A stretch of DNA of 64,000 nucleotides, taken from positions 124,001-188,000 of the forward strand of contig OX337237.1 in NCBI GenBank assembly GCA_946965045.2, given 5' to 3'. The notes beneath the pieces were generated by a model that was not told the DNA's origin, searched no databases, and saw only the letters and a program-made list of their open reading frames with translations. This DNA comes from Epithemia pelagica. Its lineage: Eukaryota > Protista > Bacillariophyta. How positions within the stretch are numbered: the stretch's first letter is position 1; the number at the start of each line of letters is the position of its first letter. Both the position numbers and the translations under genes were made by a program. Below are positions 6,001 through 18,651 of the stretch, in pieces.

Positions 6001-7703
6001 CGTATGAATTGAACTACGAGGGAGCCCGTTTGGCCCGTGAGGTTTGTGACGAGGTCACTGCGAAAGATCCGACGAAGCCCCGCTTCGTCATTGGTGCGAT
6101 CGGTCCAACGAACAGGACAGGATCGATCTCCCCTTCCGTAGAGGATCCATCAGCTCGTAACGTAACTTTCGACGAGTTAGTGGAGACATATTTCGAGCAG
6201 ATTGTAGGCCTCGTTGATGGTGGATGTGACATATTGATGGTGGAAACAATTTTCGATACATTGAATGCTAAGGCCGCCCTGTACTCTGTTGGGGAGTTCC
6301 TTGAGATGAGCGGAGTGGACATTCCTGTGTTTGTGTCTGGTACTCTGGTGGACCAGTCGGGGCGTACACTTTCGGGTCAAACAGGCAACGCATTCTATGC
6401 ATCAATCCGCCACGCGAGGCCCATGTGCGTGGGTCTAAATTGTGCTTTGGGAGCTATACCCATGACGCCCTTTGTGGAAAACTTATCGAAAGCCGCTGAG
6501 TGCTTCGTTCACGTGTACGCCAATGCAGGCCTACCGAATGCAATGGGTGGTTACGATGATACGCCTGAGATGATGGCAGATCAGAATGAGACTTTCTTCA
6601 AGAACGGGTGGCTGAATATGGTCGGAGGGTGCTGTGGTTCTACTCCGGCGCATCTCAAAGAAATTTACCGAAGGGCTGAGAAATATAAACCTAGAAAACT
6701 CCCAGATGTGTGTCGTCCGAAAATGTGGCTGTCCGGTCTGGAAGATTTGGTTGTTGAGGACGTACACAACCATCTTGGATACCCCTTCTTGAATGTAGGA
6801 GAGCGTTCCAACATCGCTGGTTCGATGAAGTTCAAGAAGCTCATGATGGCCGGTGATTATGGAGCTGCAATGGACATTGCGAGGAAGCAGGTTGTGGACG
6901 GTGCGCATGTGATTGACATCAACGTCGATGACGGTATGTTGGACGGTCTCGCGGCAATGCAGAAGTTTGTCAAGATTGCCGTGACCGAACCAGATGTGTG
7001 CAAGGCTCCGTTTATGTTGGATGCATCGAAATTTGAGATTGTTTTAGCTGGGTTGAAATGGTGTCAAGGCAAGCCAATCATCAATTCGATCTCATTGAAG
7101 GTTGGTGAGAAGCTTTTCATGGAACAAGCGACCCTGTTAAGGAAACATGGAGCTGCTGTGGTTGTGATGGCGTTTGACGAGGAAGGGCAGGCTGCAACAG
7201 AGGAAGACAAGGTTCGCATCTGCAAGCGTTCGTATGACATCTTGGTGGATCACGTTGGTTTCCCACCAGAGGACATTGTTTTCGACCCGAACGTTCTTAC
7301 GATTGGTACGGGCATGGAAGAGCATGCGAATTACGGAGTTGATTTTATCAAAGCTACGAGACGCATCAAGGAAATCTGTCCTTACGCAAAGATTAGTGGT
7401 GGCATATCGAACTTGTCGTTTGGATTTAGAGGTGTGACGAAGGTCCGTGAGTCGATTCACTCTGTGTTCCTACACCACGCAATTTTAGAGTCAGGAATGG
7501 ATGTCGGCATCGTCAACGCGAAAGAGATGTTAGCGTTGTCAGAGATTGAACCGGAAATGCTAAAAGCTTGCGACGATCTCGTGTTCAACAAGACAGAGGA
7601 AGCTACTGAGAAAATGCTCGAGGTTACACAAAAAGAGAGATTGGCAATGGAAGAGAGAAAGAAAGGTGGTGGTGCCAAGGCAGTCAAGAAAACATCCTGG
7701 CGT
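3051..7703 (+). CDS. METH: Cobalamin-dependent methionine synthase, 5' part: (Hcy-pterin)x2 up to the start of the cap domain, interrupted by a transposon
   Basis: Motifs YDGGMGT, GNND.LSITQP, TNTFSST, ETIFDTLNAKAA, GLNCALG, PNAMGGYD-like, GGCCGSTP, GERSNIAGS, IDINVDDGMLDG and ISGGISNLSFGFRG. Two repeats are offset by 2262 nt. The frame stays open to ...TGG CGT (W-R) at 7703. Confidence 0.96.
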
Positions 7704-7990
7704 CACTGCAAGTCATTTCCACATTGATTAAAGTTTTCTCAACCGAATATAATTAAGTCAATCGATTTCCAATTGACTAACTCAAGCCACACTTCCAAGT
7801 CCGACTATTCTGTACTAAGAACTGGATAAATATTAATCAATTTAACATCAACCGATCAATTTCTTAGCCAATACGTCCAACTGACTGAAACTTAAGTCAA
7901 TACTTGTCAACTGTCCAAAAATTTAATCAATACACATCAACCGAGTTAAACTTTTTTACCCGCGGAAACTTTAATCAGTCCTTTTCAAAC
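7704..7990. repeat. Left TIR and AT-rich subterminal repeats
   Basis: TIR at 7704-7715; TCAACCGA at 7739, 7848 and 7937, plus related AGTCAAT motifs. Confidence 0.8.
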
Positions 7991-8256
7991 TGTTCTAATG
8001 TCTTACACGTTTTTTTTGTCTCTCTCTCTCTCTCTCTCTCTCTCATATTATGTGTGTGTGTGGCCCGCGACAGACACACACACTATATATAGACACACAC
8101 AGCACATCGTCACAGAGCACTCTCACTTTTTTCTCATCTCTCTCTCTCTCGTCCTCACACGAAGACAAAATTTCGAGAGAGACGAGATAAAGACTGAGAG
8201 AGATTGGAAAGACACTTTTAATTCATATAGATTCATACAATATTGCTTCGACGTTC

Positions 8257-9288
8257 CTAATTCTCTGAATTCTCCTTTTGTGTTAAGTCAAAAATAAGGT
8301 GATGGTAGTCTCGCTTACGATCGTTTTTGCCCGAACCAGCCTCAGTCATCCTTTTTCCGTATAACGAAGCAACGAATGACAAGTCATCGTGTGTACCAAA
8401 TCGGAGAACACCTCCTCTGTATGACAATTTGATTGGGTTACTAGATAACGCCAAACCGGTTGTTTGGAATGATTCTTGAAGCGTGACAGGATGATAATCA
8501 CAATCCGACATGAAGTTTGCAAGGGTATATATATACTGAATACATTCCACTGGAGTGTGTCCTATCTTCAAAGACAAATCATCTTCATCCAATACACCCG
8601 ATTCACTTTGTTTCTTTACAATCTTGAGTACAAACTTTCGAAGTCTATACAATCCCACCCAAATATTCTGATGTCGGCATCGTCTTTGAAAAATAAGATT
8701 TCCAGGCTGCTTGTAACTTGGATGCTTGTTAACGAAGTACATCGAGACCGTGGTTGGCAGAGGATCAAGTTGATGTTTCGTTTTTTCCACATAGGAATAA
8801 ATCACGTGATGCCAGAATCTCGCAAAATATACATTGTGCATTCCTTGCGCCCATGAATGCTCTGTCCTTTTCAACTCTTCAAGAGTGAATACAAAGGTTG
8901 GGAATAAGACCTTGATTTCTTCATCTGGTTTTTCTCCAGATATCCAACGTAACTCCGTAGATTCATACAGTTCCTCGTTCATTGATCCACAGCCATCTTG
9001 AATTTTTGCGTGGTTATGCTTTGGGGGCTTTGGATGCCAGCTCAAACGTTTTGTGGGGAACAGTGGTAGGAAAAGCCGTAACCGAATAGTTGTAGCCGCC
9101 ACGTCAGGATCTTCGTCCTCATCTTGTTGTCTTTCCTCAAGTCGAGCGATAGTTATTGCTTTAGAGTCTTCCTGGTTGCGTAATTGGATTGCAACAAATG
9201 ATCCGATTCTCAAGGTGTCCATTAATGTCCAATCGAAATATGGCACTTGATTGACATAAACGGTTTCTGTATATGGCGAAGACGACAT
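8257..9288 (-). CDS. Transposon cargo ORF (~343 aa), BAH-domain-like N-terminal half
   Basis: Open ORF with ATG at 9288. The pattern IGSFVAI...TIARLEE...IRLRLFL...EELYES...IKV...NVYFARF follows the BAH strand order (by eye only). Confidence 0.55.
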   Translation of the reverse strand: MSSSPYTETVYVNQVPYFDWTLMDTLRIGSFVAIQLRNQEDSKAITIARLEERQQDEDEDPDVAATTIRLRLFLPLFPTKRLSWHPKPPKHNHAKIQDGCGSMNEELYESTELRWISGEKPDEEIKVLFPTFVFTLEELKRTEHSWAQGMHNVYFARFWHHVIYSYVEKTKHQLDPLPTTVSMYFVNKHPSYKQPGNLIFQRRCRHQNIWVGLYRLRKFVLKIVKKQSESGVLDEDDLSLKIGHTPVECIQYIYTLANFMSDCDYHPVTLQESFQTTGLALSSNPIKLSYRGGVLRFGTHDDLSFVASLYGKRMTEAGSGKNDRKRDYHHLIFDLTQKENSEN

Positions 9289-9790
9289 GGTCAACCAAGA
9301 CTTTTACTCTAACAGAAGGACTCCAAACGACTTCGTTTACACGTTTACCATGGCGCGATGATTATGTGTGTGATGTGTACCTCTGTTTTTTCATTCCTGA
9401 CCCATACATACATGCTTCTCGACTCTCTCTCATCTTTTCTCTCTCTTCAGTCGTTTTCCCACATCCGATGTGCCAATTCGAAAAATTTTGGGTAACCGTC
9501 TCCTAGATATCCTACCACTAATTACCCTCATGCGCGCCTACGATAAGTTTTTTCAAAATCATTTAAAGAAATATAACCGACAAGAATTGTCGTAAACCTC
9601 TATGTACTTTTTGCAACAAATGCATCGACTTCTCGATATTTTGTTACTTTCGAATATGACATAGAATATTATTCCAATTTATATGATATAACACCTTAGT
9701 ACTAATACTTTTCAGTAGAGCAAATTATGTACTCTACCAGATTCTCGTTCTACCAAACGCCTAGTTTTTCATATCCAAACATGTTTTTTA

Positions 9791-11419
9791 ATGTATTTAA
9801 CTAAATACTACTCCCGTGTATTATGTTTCAAATGGCTTACTTGGTCTTGTTATCGCGTGCCGATTACACGACCAATTTTTCGATTGGCCATTGTCTCACT
9901 TTTTTCTGTTGTTTCACAATCGCTCATTTTTTACCCTGTAACGGAGAATTGGACGTATATATTATGCTTCCATTTTCATGCACATGGACTCCACATGGTC
10001 GACAATTTCGCAAACAATTGGGGTGCTTCATATGTCCTTCTGGACCGTACCAGGCGATCCCATAAGCGCAGCGTTGTGGATGTATACAACAACGACGACA
10101 GTTTGTCAGAAATCGAGCTACGATCCATCATTGACAGTACAACACAAGGTTATTTCAGTCTCGAAAAACTTACGCCTAACGGATCCGATGCTAATTTGTT
10201 TGCAATCAGCAGCCTCAGTAATGGTAACAGCAACGGAGTTCTCGTTGGTTGTGGAAGTTATGTGGCGGGGGATTTAGGACCATTACAAACATGGTCCACG
10301 GCTGATTTTCGGTTAGACGACGGACCCTCATTTATCTCCCAACCTGACACTGATCAGGTATCAAACTCTGCAAGATTTCGGACAATCGCCCTACCTTACT
10401 GCATAGAAGGTATTATGTCACAGAGAGTACAGCAATCATACGAAGACTTATGTTCTCATCTCATACACAAACGATGTGTGTACCAACATTCCATTGGTCA
10501 ACCGGTAACCGTGCTATTTCTCGAACTGATGCTTGCTTCGAACGGATGCACCTTGAGTGACAGGTTTCTCAGTTGTCTCGGAAAACTATCGATGCATCAT
10601 TCGTTTGGCATTATTGTCGACGAGATTCTAACGGGGGCTCGGAACGATTGCATGTTGATGACTATGCAAGCCCCCAAATTGTTTGCAGAACAAGTTTCCT
10701 ACGTAACACTTGGCAAATTTTGTAACTGTGGAATTGTATTGACGGGGAAACAACATGACCTCAAACTCGACTCAGAAAAGAGACTCTTGAATGCCAGGGG
10801 GGTGACAACTGCATTGCAATGCTCGATTCCGCTACCATTCTTTCGACAGGTACAAAGACTTCTTCATACCATTCCAGCTCGCCGTCGTAAGTGCATCTCC
10901 AACTTCCAAACACTAGCCGAGAAAGACTGTTGGGGTATTGGATTAATCATATTCATACCTCGACGTTGTACCGGTGCGAGGAATGGTACGGCCAACAGAC
11001 TGCTTCCGTTATTGGATGACGTCCCGGCCGATAGCCTGCGGTCAACTCCCGAACCATCTTGGACTCGTCGGCAAGTTAACAACAAAACTATGTCTTCCGT
11101 ATTGAAATGGGCGAACTCGGTGTGTTTCTTACAGGAGAGTATCTCCTTCCAGTCCGAACTTCCATGTTTGTACCATATGATAAACCACTTGGTCGAACAT
11201 CGATTCTCCGAAGGTTGGGTAACTTCAGCAGATTTACATGTCAGTGTGACTCGCCACGTGCATGGATGTGAAAATGCTTCAATGCGATTGACAACAAACG
11301 TGCTCCGATGCCTTGAAAAGGCTGGCTACATAAAGAAGCAGCTTAAAACTCATCGACGTTTACAGGGATGGTCCATTTTGATGGAACGTCTGGACTATCA
11401 TTTCATTCATCACTGTTAA
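9791..11419 (+). CDS. Class-III aminotransferase-fold protein with a C-terminal winged-helix-like domain (likely start ATG 9995, ~474 aa)
   Basis: In order: PNGSDANLFAI (cf. SGSEANEAA), GSYVAG (cf. xYHG), LELMLASNG (cf. EPIQGEGG), FLSCLGKLSMHHSFGIIVDEILTGAR (cf. LIxDEVQTGxGR), YVTLGK (PLP Lys), WGIGL (cf. RGxGL). The C-terminus has NVLRCLEKAGYIKK...RRLQGW. Confidence 0.75.
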   Translation: MYLTKYYSRVLCFKWLTWSCYRVPITRPIFRLAIVSLFSVVSQSLIFYPVTENWTYILCFHFHAHGLHMVDNFANNWGASYVLLDRTRRSHKRSVVDVYNNDDSLSEIELRSIIDSTTQGYFSLEKLTPNGSDANLFAISSLSNGNSNGVLVGCGSYVAGDLGPLQTWSTADFRLDDGPSFISQPDTDQVSNSARFRTIALPYCIEGIMSQRVQQSYEDLCSHLIHKRCVYQHSIGQPVTVLFLELMLASNGCTLSDRFLSCLGKLSMHHSFGIIVDEILTGARNDCMLMTMQAPKLFAEQVSYVTLGKFCNCGIVLTGKQHDLKLDSEKRLLNARGVTTALQCSIPLPFFRQVQRLLHTIPARRRKCISNFQTLAEKDCWGIGLIIFIPRRCTGARNGTANRLLPLLDDVPADSLRSTPEPSWTRRQVNNKTMSSVLKWANSVCFLQESISFQSELPCLYHMINHLVEHRFSEGWVTSADLHVSVTRHVHGCENASMRLTTNVLRCLEKAGYIKKQLKTHRRLQGWSILMERLDYHFIHHC

Positions 11420-11428
11420 TTATATAAT

Positions 11429-14400
11429 CTACATAGGAAACAACACTTCGTCCATTTCTGGGACAGAGAACTCTCCGTCTGACATCCTCTCTCTCCACAG
11501 GTGACCGACTGCGTAGTACTTGTTCATAAACTTACCAGAGTGTTTGGAAAGTTGCGGCAGTAACAGCAATATTTCCTCCATGACATCTTCTTTCACTTTC
11601 GTAATAGACTCGTATAGCATGCATTGTTCTTCTATTGTAATCGGAGCAGTCCAACAACGAGTAGTTGTCCATTCCCCCTTACTGTCGTCGAATGATATAC
11701 GGACAAGCTTAACTAGACGTCTTGTGTTACCCCTTTCTTCACCAATCGGTCGAAAAGGAAGATAGACTGATCCATCCTTTCCTAATATTGCGCAGAGAAT
11801 GGAATTATCACGACAATCCTCTTCCATGGTTTGGCGACTCTTGAATATCTTCACGAGCGACTCTGCGTCCCTTGTTTGTTTAGTCACTCCGTCTTCTTCG
11901 TCCAAACGTCCCATCATCCAATTAAGTGTATCATGTTGATACAACTTTCGCAGTGTGATGGTATTCCAATCAGCCGTCGCCCTTTTGATGCTAAGGAGCG
12001 GCTTAACCTGTTGTATCTTCCTTTCTCCAGCAAAACCGCCTTCCCAGTGTAAAATTGCCGGTCCCATGGTTGCATGGGACGAAGCGCATGCCAAGATACC
12101 TAAGGAATTGGACTTTACGAAATTTGGATTCCGTTTCTGACGGTCTGAACGGAAAAGGATTTCATCCAATTCAACCATACAATCCAGATATTGCAGAATG
12201 TAATCGTACATTCCGTCGATAACCTTCGTTTTGCTCATAATCCGTCCAAAGGCAGAGGCCATGGCATTCACAAACCGAGCAACACATAACCACTCTTGTT
12301 TGTATTCGCTGTCGTTTTGCATTAATCGTTGGTCCATTAACGCCGGAACACTCAAAACAAACTTCCAAATTCTAGCTCCCAAAAGATAATTCTCGGACAC
12401 CCATGTCCCAGTCCCCCAGGAGGAAGTTGAAAGAGGCTGGGCACAAAAGTACTTCGTAGCTCTGATACCTCGAATGCCGGTCAGAAACTTGTTTGCTTCC
12501 TTGCCAAAGGGAGCCAATTTGTTATATTTCCCCATCCACTTAGAGATCATATCGATATTGCTCTTCACATGCCCAAGGAACAACATGTGCATGGGAGCAT
12601 AATGGCATTTCGCGAGAGATCGTACATCATTCCAGCACACAGGCAGTGTAATCTGATCACTTCCGGCAACACATTCTCTGTAGATTGAGTCAATGATCTT
12701 ATTGGTACATCCACATGTCTTCAAATAGGAAGTAAAATTGCCCTTTGTCCACATCATTTGGTTTTGTCGTCCTCCGGGTTGTCGGGTCTTGGCATTATGA
12801 CAGGCAAAAACAACGGCAGACTTGAGCCAATCGACACACAATCGTACTGTTTGTAAATATATGCGTTTCTCAGTTTTTTTTTGTCGCTTTCTGCGTTTCC
12901 GACCAGTCCCAATGGAATTTTCGACGGTCACTGTGACAGGTGTTTCCTGATCTATTTCGTCATTATTTCGCGTGTCAGGAACATCTTCTATATTATACCA
13001 AAGATCTCTGAATTTTGGAGGGATTGGAGCGCCCGTGCGTATGTCGAACTTTTGTGGGTATTCTGCCGGGGCCAGAAATACCAACTTCGGATCCTCTAGT
13101 GACCAATCAGAGCAGATTCTACAGTTTGGCGAACGCCCGTCCTCTGGAATAGAATATTGATGTTGCTTGATTCGTTGTTTTCGCTTCTTCCGACATTCCT
13201 CGCATGATGGAAGATGGTTTATGCGACAGCTTCCATCCACATGGGTCGCATAACCCCAACATGATGAATAGGTACCGTTATGGTCCCCAAGTTGAAAGAT
13301 GGTAGTCCTTTCGGGTCTATCGACTGAGATCAATAACTTATCTATAACAATCTTGACAATCCGTTTCATCCCTCCATGATAAACTCTTAATCCAGTTGAT
13401 GACAATTCTTGTAGCTCTTGTGTCAAGCATTCTTCGATTCCCGAATGATCATCACCTTTACTAGCAAGGGACATGAAATAGGTATGCCTTCCATTGTGTT
13501 CTTCTAAAGTCGGAGGACAAATGGTGAATGTATTGCACCAAACCTGGTTACGTGAGGATTTTGTGTTATTTGGATCAAAATCATCCCTCCACTCACGTAA
13601 CCAGAGGTACATGATGAATTCATCGTCTACATCTGATTCAATACTCAACTGTTTGGCTTGCATCCGCATCAAGAGTTCCTTGGCATGTGGTGTTGCCGAC
13701 ACACTCGGGATTTCTTCTTTATCACCAATTTGTAACTTCGTGTAGAAATCGTAATCGTCAAATGAGACTGCCTTACCCAATTCATTGGCAAGCACATCCG
13801 ATAACTTCACATAGGAATGTGTTCCGTCAGCGGAAGTCTTGGGGACAGGATGGGGTAGGTTCGGCATAATGGCATGTTTTCCAGTGAGAAAGAATCGATC
13901 GAAATCATCTTTCGTAGTTGGAAGACGAATAGTTCGAAAAATTGACAACTCTTTGTTGCCATTATTGCCTGCTGTGGCAAGGATGTCGCTCAAAATCTTC
14001 TTTTGGGGATCCGACAGCTGGATGAGTAGCGATGATAACTGTAAACAGAATCGTGCTTCTTCCTTAGTCACTTGCTCCGGATTAACATTGAAAGCCTTTC
14101 CTGTTAAGAATCGGATTCCCATTCCCTTACACTTATTTTCGTTCAGAAGAAAGTCTGGTGTCGTGGAGGATGCGTCGAATCCCAACTGGAAGAACTCCGG
14201 TTTTGTTGGCATTTGGTGTTGAATCACAACATCTTCGGTGATTTCTGGAATATCCATTTTTTCATGATCATTTCCCAAATGGTCATTCGGGTTACCCAGC
14301 ATTCCATCATGTGTGGAATCTTCGGTCAGCCGTTCCTGTTCCATCAATTTCCTTTGATGCTGAACACTGGTAGCGTGGCGTTGGATGTATTTCCACTGGG

Positions 14401-14671
14401 CTATATATCCTGCAGATTTCCGGCAAGTTGCTGCACCCCTGATACACAGACGGCAACAAAAGAATGTTTTTGCTGCAAGTGAACATGAATTGACAGTATT
14501 TTGGCACACTCCTTCGTACAGCAGACCCTGCATATTTGGACTCGCTTGTTTCGAAAGAATACATCGTGTTATCCGATTGCATTCTCGACAGGGAATATTC
14601 AGTTCAGGAGAAGTCATGACAAGTATGTAATGGAGAAGGACTTGTTGCGTCTCCTTCGGTAAAGCACTCAA
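11429..14671 (-). CDS. CACTA/CMC-type DDE transposase (~1060-1080 aa)
   Basis: REWRDDFDPNNT, SVDRPER, HNGTYSSCW, APMHMLFLGHVK and HWEGGFAGERKI motifs, with N-terminal CxxC clusters. The ORF is intact and lies between CACTG TIRs. Confidence 0.85.
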   Translation of the reverse strand: MSALPKETQQVLLHYILVMTSPELNIPCRECNRITRCILSKQASPNMQGLLYEGVCQNTVNSCSLAAKTFFCCRLCIRGAATCRKSAGYIAQWKYIQRHATSVQHQRKLMEQERLTEDSTHDGMLGNPNDHLGNDHEKMDIPEITEDVVIQHQMPTKPEFFQLGFDASSTTPDFLLNENKCKGMGIRFLTGKAFNVNPEQVTKEEARFCLQLSSLLIQLSDPQKKILSDILATAGNNGNKELSIFRTIRLPTTKDDFDRFFLTGKHAIMPNLPHPVPKTSADGTHSYVKLSDVLANELGKAVSFDDYDFYTKLQIGDKEEIPSVSATPHAKELLMRMQAKQLSIESDVDDEFIMYLWLREWRDDFDPNNTKSSRNQVWCNTFTICPPTLEEHNGRHTYFMSLASKGDDHSGIEECLTQELQELSSTGLRVYHGGMKRIVKIVIDKLLISVDRPERTTIFQLGDHNGTYSSCWGYATHVDGSCRINHLPSCEECRKKRKQRIKQHQYSIPEDGRSPNCRICSDWSLEDPKLVFLAPAEYPQKFDIRTGAPIPPKFRDLWYNIEDVPDTRNNDEIDQETPVTVTVENSIGTGRKRRKRQKKTEKRIYLQTVRLCVDWLKSAVVFACHNAKTRQPGGRQNQMMWTKGNFTSYLKTCGCTNKIIDSIYRECVAGSDQITLPVCWNDVRSLAKCHYAPMHMLFLGHVKSNIDMISKWMGKYNKLAPFGKEANKFLTGIRGIRATKYFCAQPLSTSSWGTGTWVSENYLLGARIWKFVLSVPALMDQRLMQNDSEYKQEWLCVARFVNAMASAFGRIMSKTKVIDGMYDYILQYLDCMVELDEILFRSDRQKRNPNFVKSNSLGILACASSHATMGPAILHWEGGFAGERKIQQVKPLLSIKRATADWNTITLRKLYQHDTLNWMMGRLDEEDGVTKQTRDAESLVKIFKSRQTMEEDCRDNSILCAILGKDGSVYLPFRPIGEERGNTRRLVKLVRISFDDSKGEWTTTRCWTAPITIEEQCMLYESITKVKEDVMEEILLLLPQLSKHSGKFMNKYYAVGHLWRERMSDGEFSVPEMDEVLFPM

Positions 14672-15355
14672 ATGTATAGATTACCGCTTTTGACAACTCC
14701 ATTGTGGGTCCTTCATTTTTTCTCTCGGACGCACGTCTCCATCCGAAGTGAGAAGCAAAAGATACACCAGTCCCAGTACGACCAAGAACTATCTAATTAA
14801 TATTGTTCCCATATTCAAATCTAATACCGAATAATCAAGTTTCTTCTAAATACGGCTAAAAACAATGTCCTATCAGATACCGCGTCCTAATACATATAAA
14901 TTAAGACGTGTCAAGACGACATCCCAGTAAAACCACAAAAAGAAATAGATAGGTAATCCTGTCGGTTGGAGCCATTCATTTTAAAATTACAGGTGACCCG
15001 GCGCGTTATGTGGATTCCCTCGTCCTTCCAAAACACAACAAGAGTGTGTGTGTGTGTGTTTGTGTGTAATGCATGGACGACAGCAATATGAGACTGGAGA
15101 CAATAAAAGAGATCGAGAGAAAGGACAGAGATGACAAAAGAATGATGTCAACATTCAATTACATTCATAAAAAGAAAGAAAGATATTTGGAAGTCCTAAT
15201 AGATAGTTTTCTGATTTGGATACAGAGTAAATGGTAAGCATCAACCACAACCATCTATAACTTGCCATTACGTATTAAGATTATGGACTAATAATCTTGG
15301 GCTTTTGTTTCTGTACGACAAATGACAGTCCATCTTTCGATCGATTAATCGGAGT

Positions 15356-18108
15356 TTGCCATGTCGCAACTCTGATTTGGCAAGTGTCAATGAACTTGAA
15401 CCTACTGTCGCTACTGAAGGGACCAATGCTCGTTTTACCACTTTGGGAAATAGGAGCAATAACCCAACATACTCTCTCGAAGGCAACATGACACGTATTA
15501 CGACGAACATCCCTGGTATTCATTCACAAGCGAGACCGCAAGAGACAGTCAATACGCAGAACATTAACAGTACGCAAAACTCCAGAGTCCTACTGGAATA
15601 TCCGCGTAACTTTTTCCATCAACAAACGGGTGCCGGCCCCTCTACACCAGAACAAGCAGCCAGATTCTGGATGTACAGGAAATCTCGTCGAACGGATGGG
15701 CTTGCCGATACCGAGGAGCAACCGGACGGAGAAGCAATGCTTCAAGAAATAAAGGATATAAGAGAAAGTCTGCGTACTTTCATTCTCCAATCTTATCAAG
15801 AAGGAATTCAACAACGTGCAAAAGAAATGAACATTACAATACCGGGTAAAGCGTCGCATCCTGTGGTTATTCAAGATTTCCGAACTATTTTGAATGGATT
15901 AGAAAGCACCAAGGAAAACCAAATGATGGTATATGAACTCGTCCATCAGTTCCACAAAGACAGGCATTGGTTAGCGGATGCGATCGATCGTTGGTTTGAT
16001 AGAGAGGGTATGGCTTTAGCACCACTGCAGAAACCCAAGTTTGTTGACGGCAAAAGAACACGCATATGCCCCACCGACCGTGGAGGTTTCTCGGCCGTCG
16101 CTCGTTCCGCAAAGTCGCAGGTAGTCGGTGGTTTGATGGCTCCAATGTTGCGAAATGCTGGTTGGAGTGTGTCGCTCACGAAAGGACAGTCGAACAAAAA
16201 CAATTACGAACACAAGGTACGATACAACCAGTCACAGTCATTCTATGTTGTAGTCAGGGAGACGGAGGTAAGTACTTGCCGTACGAGTTCAATGATATGT
16301 ATGAAAGTACTTACTATGTTCGGTATAACAATTTGGTGAAAAGGAGAATGAACAACGAGAAATCGAAGTTGATAGTGCAAGCCCAGACTTTGAAAGAGCA
16401 AGTCATATATTCACCCAGGCAATTGGTGTGAACATTGACGCAGAATGTGTTCGCATGTTGTGGGCAACATGTTTTGTTCCACGTCCAAGAAATAATACAA
16501 ACCCCGAAATAACGGGCCGAGAATTGGTGGTTCAACGAAATCCAGCCGAGGTGTCAGCGTTAACAGAGCAAGAGATGGATGGGAATGTCCAAGCGCAGAG
16601 TGAAAACAGGAAATCTGTTGTTCAAGAAGAAGTGGTTGCAACTGTTGGTATGATGCACAGGACATATGATACAGACCGACCTGAAAATGCAGTGGACTCA
16701 AGCAAATCTATATTGGTCAATGAGAGTAATAACGGACAACATCCAAATGGTACAACTGTACCATTGGGAATTGTGGGAACACAAGAGTCGGGTGACGAAG
16801 AAACAGAAAGAGAAGGAAGTGGACAACAAGAAACCGATTCTGTTGCATCAAAAGCACTATTCGAGGAAGCACTAATTATGGAACGGAACGCACAATTGAA
16901 CATGACTGGAAATATAGAGATGCAAACAGCAGGATCAACAGATCATAGACGAAACAATGAGTCTCAAGGGAGCCGTGAAGATGGAATAGAAGAGAAAGAG
17001 AATCAATGTCCGAGTGGTAATCAGATTGATCAAGAGATTAATGAAAGTGTACAGCATGAGGGACGGTCTCCGTTGAGAAAGAAAGAACAGCACGGGCAAG
17101 TTGTAATAAATGAAAGTGCTGGGTGTATTCAAATGAAAAGGAACACGAAAACGAATGAGGATGACGCTCGACCATCTGTTGAAGAACATCTCAAAGATAC
17201 GGATTATGGAGATGAGAACAGTGTCATACACGATGGTGCGGAAGACAATGTGGAACGTCCAACGAAGGTAAAGGAAGTTCTTCAACAGCAGGATGTTGCT
17301 ATGTCTACTAACACAGGAGTGAACGAATGCTCATCACAGAAAAGTGATGAGAGCACAAATGCTGGTATACTAAGGCAAACACAAGAAGACTTGGGCCAAA
17401 TGTCTCTAGTAACACAACAAGTATCGGTTGTGTCAAGGAGTGAAGCAGAAGAGAAAACAGAGTGTTCCAAGGAGGTCGTTAGAAACCATAACGTGAAAGG
17501 GACGACTATTGCAGAAGAGAAAAAGGTATGTAATGACATCATGTCTTTCGATTGTAATGTGAGAGATTGAACTAACGATAAATGTATGAAATGATTGTTT
17601 TGGTGAATGATAATGGAAAAGGCTGCCAGTCCTAGAAATAAAAAGAGGAAGGTAAGATATGAAATGGATGATGAGTTGATCACGATGAATGTTATGATAG
17701 CTAAAAAACCATCTGTCCTTGTGGTTACAGGAAATGGATAAGTCTGGGGTTAAGAAGACCTCAGGGATGCGGTGTAACAAGAAGTGTGACGATAAGAAGT
17801 GCAAACATAAGGAGCTGAGTTTGTTTATGCGGCAGGATACCCCGGGTTATTTCACAAACAGTTATTATGAGATGAATAAGGGATGGCCGTCCAGATGCAT
17901 GGAATGTAACGAGAAATTTGGCGAGGATGGGAAAAAGGTTAATCAAAGGAATCCAGTGATGGCCTGTCGGAATGCTTGTATTCCTACACATTCATGTACT
18001 CATGCGTATTGTCATGAGTGCTTCTGCAAATTGATGGTAAAGGAAATGGAGAAAGAAACGGGAGGACAACGATCAATTAGACGAAAACGTACACCAAAGG
18101 AAAGGTGA
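15356..18108 (+). CDS. Multi-exon transposon cargo gene: N-terminal globular region, long acidic low-complexity region, C-terminal Cys/His zinc finger
   Basis: ORFs 15356..16339, 16428..17570 and 17719..18108 can be joined by candidate introns: GTAAGT donor at 16268 with an in-frame AG at 16343, donors at 17526 and ~17652, acceptor at 17730. The finger reads CMEC...CRNAC...CTHAYCHEC. Exon boundaries are partly inferred. Confidence 0.6.
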
Positions 18109-18339
18109 GCGAAAGATTGATGGTGGTGGCAAAAGATTGTGTGTGTGTGTTTTGGTATACGTAAAATATAAACAAAACTTATATGTCAGCAGGCGGTTAT
18201 GAAGTATATAGCGTTCTGAGAGGAGAAAAAAGAGAAACATCATGAGACGACGACGAGAGAGAGAAAGTGATGAGAGAGATGAGAGAGACGAAAATTAAAA
18301 GTCACGGTTGAACTGACTTACGAGAGAGAAAAAATATAT

Positions 18340-18649
18340 TTAGACAGTTGCCGGGAGAAGAATAATATAATAGAGTCAGTTGATATAACCTGTCTAACTG
18401 AATATGTAGGAGATGGAATTTAAAAATAGTTGGTGAAACTGACTTAGTCGGGCAGTTGATAAAACTATGGTAACTGAGTAAATAATCAGAGCTGATATGG
18501 AACTGTTTAGGTGATTAGAGAATTGGATAAGAGAAAATCTGAACTGACTAATGTAAGTTGGGGGGATTGATGACGTGATAATTTTACACAGTCGATAACA
18601 ATTGATTAAGTTAAACACCGGCTTTTCAGTTGAATGTTGACTTGCAGTG
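18340..18649. repeat. Right subterminal repeats and TIR
   Basis: TCAGTTGA (reverse complement of TCAACTGA) at 18376 and 18626, GCAGTTGA near 18452, and the TIR at 18638-18649. Confidence 0.8.
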
Positions 18650-18651
18650 GT

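Follow-up and report, generated by a model that had tools for sequence, protein, structure and literature searches.

Most accessory proteins of cut-and-paste transposons simply bind DNA; TnpA of plant CACTA elements and the Myb-like protein of Harbinger, for example, bring ends and transposase together and/or control promoters. In the regulator GabR, pyridoxal 5′-phosphate (PLP) and gamma-aminobutyrate together form an effector switch. A few transposon lineages carry DNA-modifying enzymes, such as those of the TET/JBP type (PMC12730594). Here we describe a transposon in a 64,000-nt stretch of the Epithemia pelagica contig OX337237.1 (positions 124,001-188,000, forward strand; hereafter the window, whose coordinates are used throughout) that encodes, beside its transposase, a protein joining the class-III aminotransferase fold of PLP enzymes to a C-terminal winged helix. 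A first-pass annotation of the window knew of no described transposon with such a gene, and our full-text literature searches likewise found no eukaryotic DNA transposon for which an aminotransferase-fold gene is described. That DNA transposons have accessory proteins is known, but this accessory architecture is unprecedented.

The protein resembles the bacterial MocR/GabR regulators in combining a winged helix with a PLP domain of fold-type I in which the Lys and the Asp are retained, and the GabR switch offers a plausible working model for it. It is nevertheless not a MocR/GabR protein, because its two domains come in reverse order, its PLP domain belongs to another class and its winged helix is of another type: in MocR/GabR a GntR-type winged helix precedes a class I domain, whereas here a Fur/PerR/ArsR/MarR-like one follows a class III domain, the opposite order that the first-pass annotation had pointed out. 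Moreover, those regulators are bacterial while this protein is eukaryotic and transposon-encoded, and no sequence relationship between them was found. Canonical class-III aminotransferases (PF00202; the M. tuberculosis lysine epsilon-aminotransferase 2cin, E. coli GabT, BioA) are just 12-16% identical to it, and they differ in having no C-terminal winged helix, no transposon coding and no DDLANNWG motif, and in keeping their substrate residues. The protein shows no sequence similarity to any Pfam family besides PF00202; the plant "aminotransferase-like mobile domain" (PMD) of MULE elements, which we take to resemble it in name only, was set aside.

Among transposon proteins, TnpA of plant En/Spm CACTA elements and the Myb-like open reading frame (ORF) of PIF/Harbinger are similar in being a second conserved protein, non-catalytic for transposition, that is encoded beside the transposase in elements whose inverted ends are short and whose subterminal repeats are multiple; a repeat-binding role for our protein would be proposed by analogy with them. 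Neither, however, has an enzyme fold, and neither resembles our protein in sequence or fold. The fungal TET/JBP transposons are likewise a DNA transposon lineage that stably holds an enzyme-fold gene beside the transposase, but there it encodes an Fe/2-oxoglutarate enzyme known to have DNA as its substrate (PMC12730594), whereas here it encodes a PLP fold.

The aminotransferase-fold gene and its protein

The six motifs that the first-pass annotation had read as those of a class-III PLP enzyme are all found, in the order it gave, in the translation of 9995-11416 (+): NGSDAN (residues 62-67), GSYVAG (87-92), ELMLASNG (177-184), IIVDEILTGAR (206-216), TLGK (238-241) and WGIGL (313-317). The codons of Asp209 and Lys241 start where it had placed the PLP-contacting Asp and the Schiff-base Lys, at 10619 and 10715. 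A search of 5.8 billion proteins returned 51 homologues (the shortest at E 6e-32), some of which carried precomputed PF00202 matches. We aligned the window protein with 29 of them, which are 27-62% identical to it. Throughout this 30-sequence alignment G63, Y89, E177, D209, K241 and W313-G314 are invariant, and S64 is present in 29 of the 30 sequences; judged from the alignment, the conservation of the motifs is far past chance. Also invariant is the N-terminal motif DDLANNWG, which is new relative to class-III aminotransferases.

On its own, the window protein gave no Pfam match to PF00202 even at E <= 1, and a PDB sequence search with it returned nothing useful. Because this copy is too diverged for such searches, the fold is visible only through the family profile and through structure. 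The PF00202 match that the first-pass annotation had asked for is absent for the window protein, whereas 26 of the 30 aligned family members match at E <= 0.1 (best 3.4e-9); seven further relatives score 16.6-23.1 bits, under the gathering score of 30.5 bits. The PDB matches of the family profile are class-III aminotransferases exclusively (best 2.9e-6). An AlphaFold2 model built from the family alignment (predicted local distance difference test, pLDDT, 88.5; predicted template modelling score, pTM, 0.91) has the two-domain fold-type I architecture of class-III aminotransferases, and the best 50 Foldseek matches of that model all belong to this class, with probability 1.0. The ESM Atlas agrees on the class-III fold, and no large cluster in it has the full architecture of aminotransferase fold plus winged helix. 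Alignment, profile and predicted structure thus all bear out the fold assigned at first pass, with the Asp and the Lys retained.

A profile comparison by hhalign with E. coli GabT, BioA and HemL (probability 96.6%, E 6e-10, 349 aligned columns) pairs the invariant residues with the cofactor-site residues of GabT (Table 1). It also agrees with the first-pass annotation that the His of YHG and the Pro of EP are altered: GabT His139 is replaced by Ala or Ser and Pro207 by Leu, and Gln242 by Met or Leu. In canonical enzymes Arg141 and Arg398 of GabT bind substrate carboxylates. In our comparison, which is less certain outside the motifs, R141 aligns with D93 (Asp in 27 of the 30 sequences) and the R398 column is unconserved. 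The window copy has two deviations of its own, a Phe for the nearly invariant Trp after the Lys and an Asn at Thr217. From these alignments, the protein has a complete class-III fold, predicted to be PLP-competent, that keeps every PLP-holding residue and lacks the residues by which canonical enzymes bind keto-acid substrates. It is a very divergent class-III offshoot rather than an ordinary member, because it falls under the Pfam threshold and has lost the substrate-binding residues, though it keeps the class-III fold and the cofactor site.

The C-terminal domain has the topology alpha1-beta1-alpha2-alpha3-beta2-wing-beta3, that is, the three helices and wing of a winged helix, as the first-pass annotation had proposed from sequence patterns; its nearest structural relatives are of the Fur/PerR/ArsR/MarR kind. 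The tail is less conserved than the aminotransferase fold (mean column identity 22% vs 37%), and the pattern LRxxExAGLLxxxxKTxKRLRxW, which spans the end of the third helix and the basic wing KTxKRLRxW, is kept across the family. In the Pfam scan of the family, one relative gave weak MarR/HTH_27 matches. The winged-helix fold is confirmed, and from it we infer DNA binding.

The listed ORF that contains the gene is longer (9791-11419, plus strand, 542 aa; coding up to 11416). We rejected the 542-aa reading of the protein, since its first 68 codons (9791-9994) are unconserved in every homologue; this segment is probably a 5′ leader. All homologues begin at MxDDLANNWG, and we therefore place the true start at the ATG at 9995.

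Two further observations concern the C-terminal region. In one contig from run X3, 43 nt of the winged-helix coding part (11206-11248; ends CT..TG, a non-canonical intron) are skipped, which would shift the frame, and run X2 from the same sample has the unskipped form; the skip may come from a copy that differs in sequence, from an error of assembly or from processing of the RNA. Long variants of the protein also occur (P0027, P0028, P0029 and P0033; L003:3894-5894 and L004:1695-3632), with 645-666 aa and about 180 extra C-terminal residues beyond the winged helix. Residues 579-619 of P0028 match a Tudor domain (PF21743), at a sub-threshold E of 5.6e-4 and in this single protein.

The transposon, its ends and its transposase

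The element sits inside the coding region of methionine synthase (METH) and breaks its reading frame. The filled allele reads ..GGC GT[CACTG...CAGTG]GT GACTTCGAG..., and an empty-allele contig reads ..GGCGTGACTTCGAGTGCAAG, with GT once only. This empty-site contig, found among the contigs of three public runs from the same organism, follows the left flank up to 7703 and then continues with the sequence right of 18651. Because it has a single GT, the 2-bp GT target duplication is proven. The depths of the empty-site contig, the element contig and the shared flank are 60, 67.6 and 120.8, respectively (two samples), which puts the insertion on about half of the chromosomes; it is therefore heterozygous, and hence young. 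With an intact, intron-free element whose ends and empty site are defined, the system is directly testable. The empty allele differs from the right flank by one base (junctions at window 7674-7707 and 18650 onward).

Related elements have similar ends. The first bases of the window element, CACTGCAA, are also present in L001, which lies elsewhere in this genome, and in L002, an element from another assembly. The exact window inverted repeat was not found in either, and the ends of those two were located separately: CACTGCAAATCA/CACTGCAACTCA with a CA target duplication for L001, and CACTGCAAACGAG with a TA duplication for L002. In both, the homologous gene lies inside an element of the same end type, a point that the first-pass annotation had proposed to check for homologues.

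The aminotransferase-fold gene is arranged tail-to-tail with the same transposase, of about 1,000-1,200 aa, at the six loci checked: the window, L001, L002, L003, L004 and L010 (a metagenome contig). Identity across these loci is 31-62%. The aminotransferase-fold protein of L001 is 62% identical to that of the window and its element has five ORFs in unchanged order; for L002 the identity to the window is 39% in the aminotransferase-fold protein and 42% in the transposase. In a set of 11 elements, pairwise identity of one protein correlates with that of the other at r = 0.88, for pairs that are non-independent and of which seven were assigned by equal size of contigs. Because of the tail-to-tail pairing at six loci and the co-divergence with the transposase, we conclude from these sequence comparisons that the aminotransferase-fold gene is a conserved core gene, co-inherited with the transposase, and not captured cargo, in correction of the first-pass annotation, which had taken it for cargo. 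The whole transposon lineage has kept the complete PLP fold and winged helix as faithfully as the transposase itself. Clusters of near-identical sequences reach 119 members for the aminotransferase-fold protein and 204 for the transposase, and the elements are therefore multi-copy in some genomes; in this genome the lineage has been active recently.

The transposase is a member of a large family (a profile search of 1.84 billion representatives gives 2,586 relatives at E <= 0.001, and still 683 when the limit is E <= 1e-30) that Pfam leaves unannotated: no Transposase_21, Plavaka or CACTA model matched any of 20 family members or 8 distant relatives. Picked by eye, the family invariants are D363/D366, D451, C490xxC493, C517xxC520, H690x4H695 and E760. 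Language-model features from the Atlas connect the transposase to a Plavaka cluster (0.96, 199 shared features), and a feature-neighbour cluster, whose kinship with the transposase is not thereby implied, structurally matches Transposase_21. Target duplications of plant CACTA elements are typically 3 bp. The EnSpm/Plavaka/Transib group (the "CMCT" clade) has CA..TG termini, 2-5 bp duplications and transposases with DDE and C(2)C plus H(3-4)H motifs (PMC12730594). Our element shares with EnSpm/CACTA-Plavaka the 5′-CA..TG-3′ termini with inverted repeats (here CACTG..CAGTG), a 2-bp duplication within the range of that group (GT in the window, TA in L002, CA in L001; PMC12730594), and, as assigned by eye, Cys and His pairs between the second Asp and the Glu of the transposase; it differs in its gene set, and no described member has an aminotransferase-fold gene. 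By language-model features and motif pattern, assignment of the transposase to the EnSpm/Plavaka superfamily is likely. Of the CACTA identity given at first pass, the CACTG ends stand, but the duplication is of 2 rather than the typical 3 bp and the transposase matches no Pfam CACTA model.

Possible roles of the protein

Both ends of the element carry TCAAYYG-type repeats in subterminal regions (Table 1). TCAACYGA is not enriched over the window as a whole (7 seen vs 7.4 expected); the point of interest is how its copies cluster, and which way they face, at either end. The window element and L001 have a common AACYGA core in their repeats (TCAACYGA or AACYGACT) and similar third helices in their winged helices, MRLTTNVLRCLEKAGY and LRYTTTILRAIEKAGY; L002 has other repeats, CACCCTAAAT, and its recognition helix differs from those two. 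The winged helix is the sole predicted DNA-binding fold of the element, structure having been predicted for the aminotransferase-fold protein alone and not for the transposase, ORF3 (a third conserved gene of the lineage) or the other ORFs; this family also gave the only DNA-binding Pfam match, a weak one, among the element proteins scanned.

Because each lineage has its own subterminal repeats, and the helices are alike where the repeats are alike, we tentatively propose, while stopping short of calling it probable, that the protein acts as a PLP-loaded dimer that binds the subterminal repeats in the manner of TnpA, possibly gated by a ligand. Dimerisation of the aminotransferase fold would present two winged helices per assembly, because class-III folds form dimers. 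These would bind the short subterminal repeats (TCAACYGA here, other repeats in distant relatives), and binding would draw ends and transposase together, regulate promoters of the element, or both. The PLP site might then act as a ligand-dependent switch as in GabR/MocR, or provide a catalytic step needed at the DNA.

Several points weigh against this proposal. The correspondence between recognition helix and repeat covers three elements only, and a basic cluster resembling a nuclear-localisation signal is restricted to 15 of the 30 proteins in the alignment. Cullin WHB domains are also among the structural matches of the winged helix, and winged helices also mediate protein contacts. The transposase has N-terminal Cys/His clusters of its own, which could bind the repeats instead, as could ORF3. 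Finally, the PLP site is fully invariant, beyond the needs of a scaffold, and would suit a true enzyme just as well.

The strongest of the alternatives, which we consider unlikely, is a PLP enzyme tethered to DNA or chromatin, serving counter-silencing or DNA processing, in which the winged helix (with, possibly, a Tudor-like tail in the long variants) only delivers the transaminase. It would act either on a macromolecule, at a terminal amine or aldehyde, or on a metabolite present locally, with lysine epsilon-amines, polyamines, S-adenosylmethionine (as amino donor) and formylated bases as candidates. Other transposons do carry DNA-modifying enzymes of the TET/JBP type (PMC12730594). That the cofactor residues are invariant over 30 proteins with identities of 27-62% suggests chemistry beyond shape, replacement of the keto-acid-binding Arg residues points to an unusual substrate, and class-III enzymes act on terminal amines and aldehydes. 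The weak C-terminal Tudor match of the long variant P0028 would fit delivery to chromatin, but it lies under the Pfam cut-off and occurs in one protein; nor was a partner enzyme recognisable in the element by Pfam scans of its ORFs or PDB profile searches with ORF3, and we know of no PLP enzyme that acts on chromatin. A more specific version, in which a chromatin-directed transaminase removes or converts an amine or aldehyde on chromatin, such as histone lysine epsilon-amines or formylated bases, or drains a local amino donor such as S-adenosylmethionine, and so erases or prevents silencing marks, would amount to an epigenetic chemistry known in no organism, and we regard it as improbable.

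We also see little chance that the protein is a pseudo-enzyme, its fold kept only as a rigid scaffold through which the winged helices dimerise or the transposase is contacted, and its binding of PLP and ligand lost. The window copy is indeed under Pfam detection, other residues stand in for the His of YHG, the Pro of EP and Gln242, the Arg residues that bind substrate have been lost, and the window copy has its unusual Phe after the Lys and Asn at Thr217; but a scaffold needs no invariant Lys241, Asp209, Gly63-Ser64, Tyr89 and Glu177, and GSAM-type enzymes likewise have Met at the Gln242 position. Very improbable, lastly, is a captured host metabolic aminotransferase with no role in the life of the element: transposons do capture host genes and metabolic enzymes make up the family that has this fold, but captured genes are lineage-specific and decaying, whereas this one is transposase-adjacent wherever the flank suffices (every homologue whose locus was looked up adjoins a transposase), co-diverges with the transposase to about 31-35% identity, is fused to the winged helix family-wide, finds no large Atlas cluster with its architecture and has no canonical host-type close relative among the 51 homologues (30 aligned, seven more Pfam-scanned).

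If the protein does act as a sensor, transposition or expression of the element would be wired to a small-molecule signal through PLP, and the protein would be a eukaryotic counterpart of GabR/MocR with reversed architecture; if it is instead an enzyme, it would be a PLP enzyme working on DNA or chromatin. The first-pass annotation had suggested that such sensing could tie transposition to nitrogen or amino-acid status; the retained PLP residues would suit an enzyme no less than a sensor. Either role, if true, would introduce a principle new to mobile elements, and the critical residues are defined: K241, D209 and the wing.

Other repeats were also noted. CT/GA-rich simple repeats occur just inward of both subterminal regions (8004-8063 and 8120-8156; 18249-18335), and the public-run contigs break within the first of them, 8004-8063. 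In L002, the intergenic segment L002:8877-9834, which directly precedes the aminotransferase-fold gene, holds an array in which a perfect 25-bp palindrome, GGTAGAACACAATTTGTGTTCTACC, recurs about ten times, in part at intervals of 69 bp; neither the window nor L001 showed a counterpart. The array looks like a bank of dimer-binding sites.

Features of the element and its other open reading frames

Table 1. Features of the transposon (window coordinates) and residues of the aminotransferase-fold protein aligned with E. coli GabT
Feature	Position	Strand	Remarks
Whole transposon, 10,946 bp	7704..18649	.	both ends read directly
Left target site duplication copy GT, 2 bp	7702..7703	.	right copy at 18650-18651
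Left terminal inverted repeat CACTGCAAGTCA, 12 bp	7704..7715	+	perfect 12-mer match to right end
Right terminal inverted repeat CACTGCAAGTCA	18638..18649	-	reverse complement of left 12-mer
Left subterminal region, five TCAAYYG-type repeats	7716..8003	+	exact TCAACYGA at 7739, 7848, 7937
Right subterminal region, four TCAAYYG-type repeats, inverted orientation	18350..18637	-	
345-aa ORF, lineage-specific	8257..9294	-	conserved only in L001 (56% identity)
Gene, 474-aa aminotransferase-fold + winged-helix protein	9995..11419	+	motifs, alignment, predicted structure
Class-III aminotransferase fold, residues 1-354	9995..11056	+	Asp209 codon 10619-10621, Lys241 codon 10715-10717
Winged-helix core, residues 388-461	11156..11377	+	three helices + beta-hairpin wing bearing KTHRRLQGW
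Transposase ORF, 1,080 aa listed (1,062 aa from first ATG)	11429..14671	-	tail-to-tail with aminotransferase-fold gene
ORF3, third conserved gene of lineage	15356..16339	+	homologous ORFs in L001, L002, L003, L004
ORF4, 380 aa	16428..17570	+	shared with L001 only
Residues G63-S64			GabT G111-S112 (phosphate-binding); hhalign
Residue Y89			GabT Y138 (stacking); hhalign
Residue E177			GabT E206; hhalign
Residue D209			GabT D239 (PLP-N1 Asp); hhalign
Residue K241			GabT K268 (Schiff-base Lys); hhalign

Three further ORFs accompany the aminotransferase-fold and transposase genes. The 345-aa ORF has no Pfam match and is unrelated to the upstream ORF of L002, and a Pfam scan of ORF4 was uninformative. 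ORF3 emerged from an all-against-all comparison of the element ORFs. It has no Pfam match, PDB profile searches with it gave chance-level matches only, and its Atlas features were uninformative. Its homologues lie at L001:15320-16348, L002:7141-8568 (-), L004:102-1220 (-) and L003:2415-3089 (-), and its placement relative to the transposase/aminotransferase-fold pair varies by lineage, on either side of it. The invariant motifs of ORF3 include YPRNFF, DRxWLAxAIDxWF and TDRGGFSAVARSAKS, and the family comprises 37 clusters, some of them with 89-133 members.

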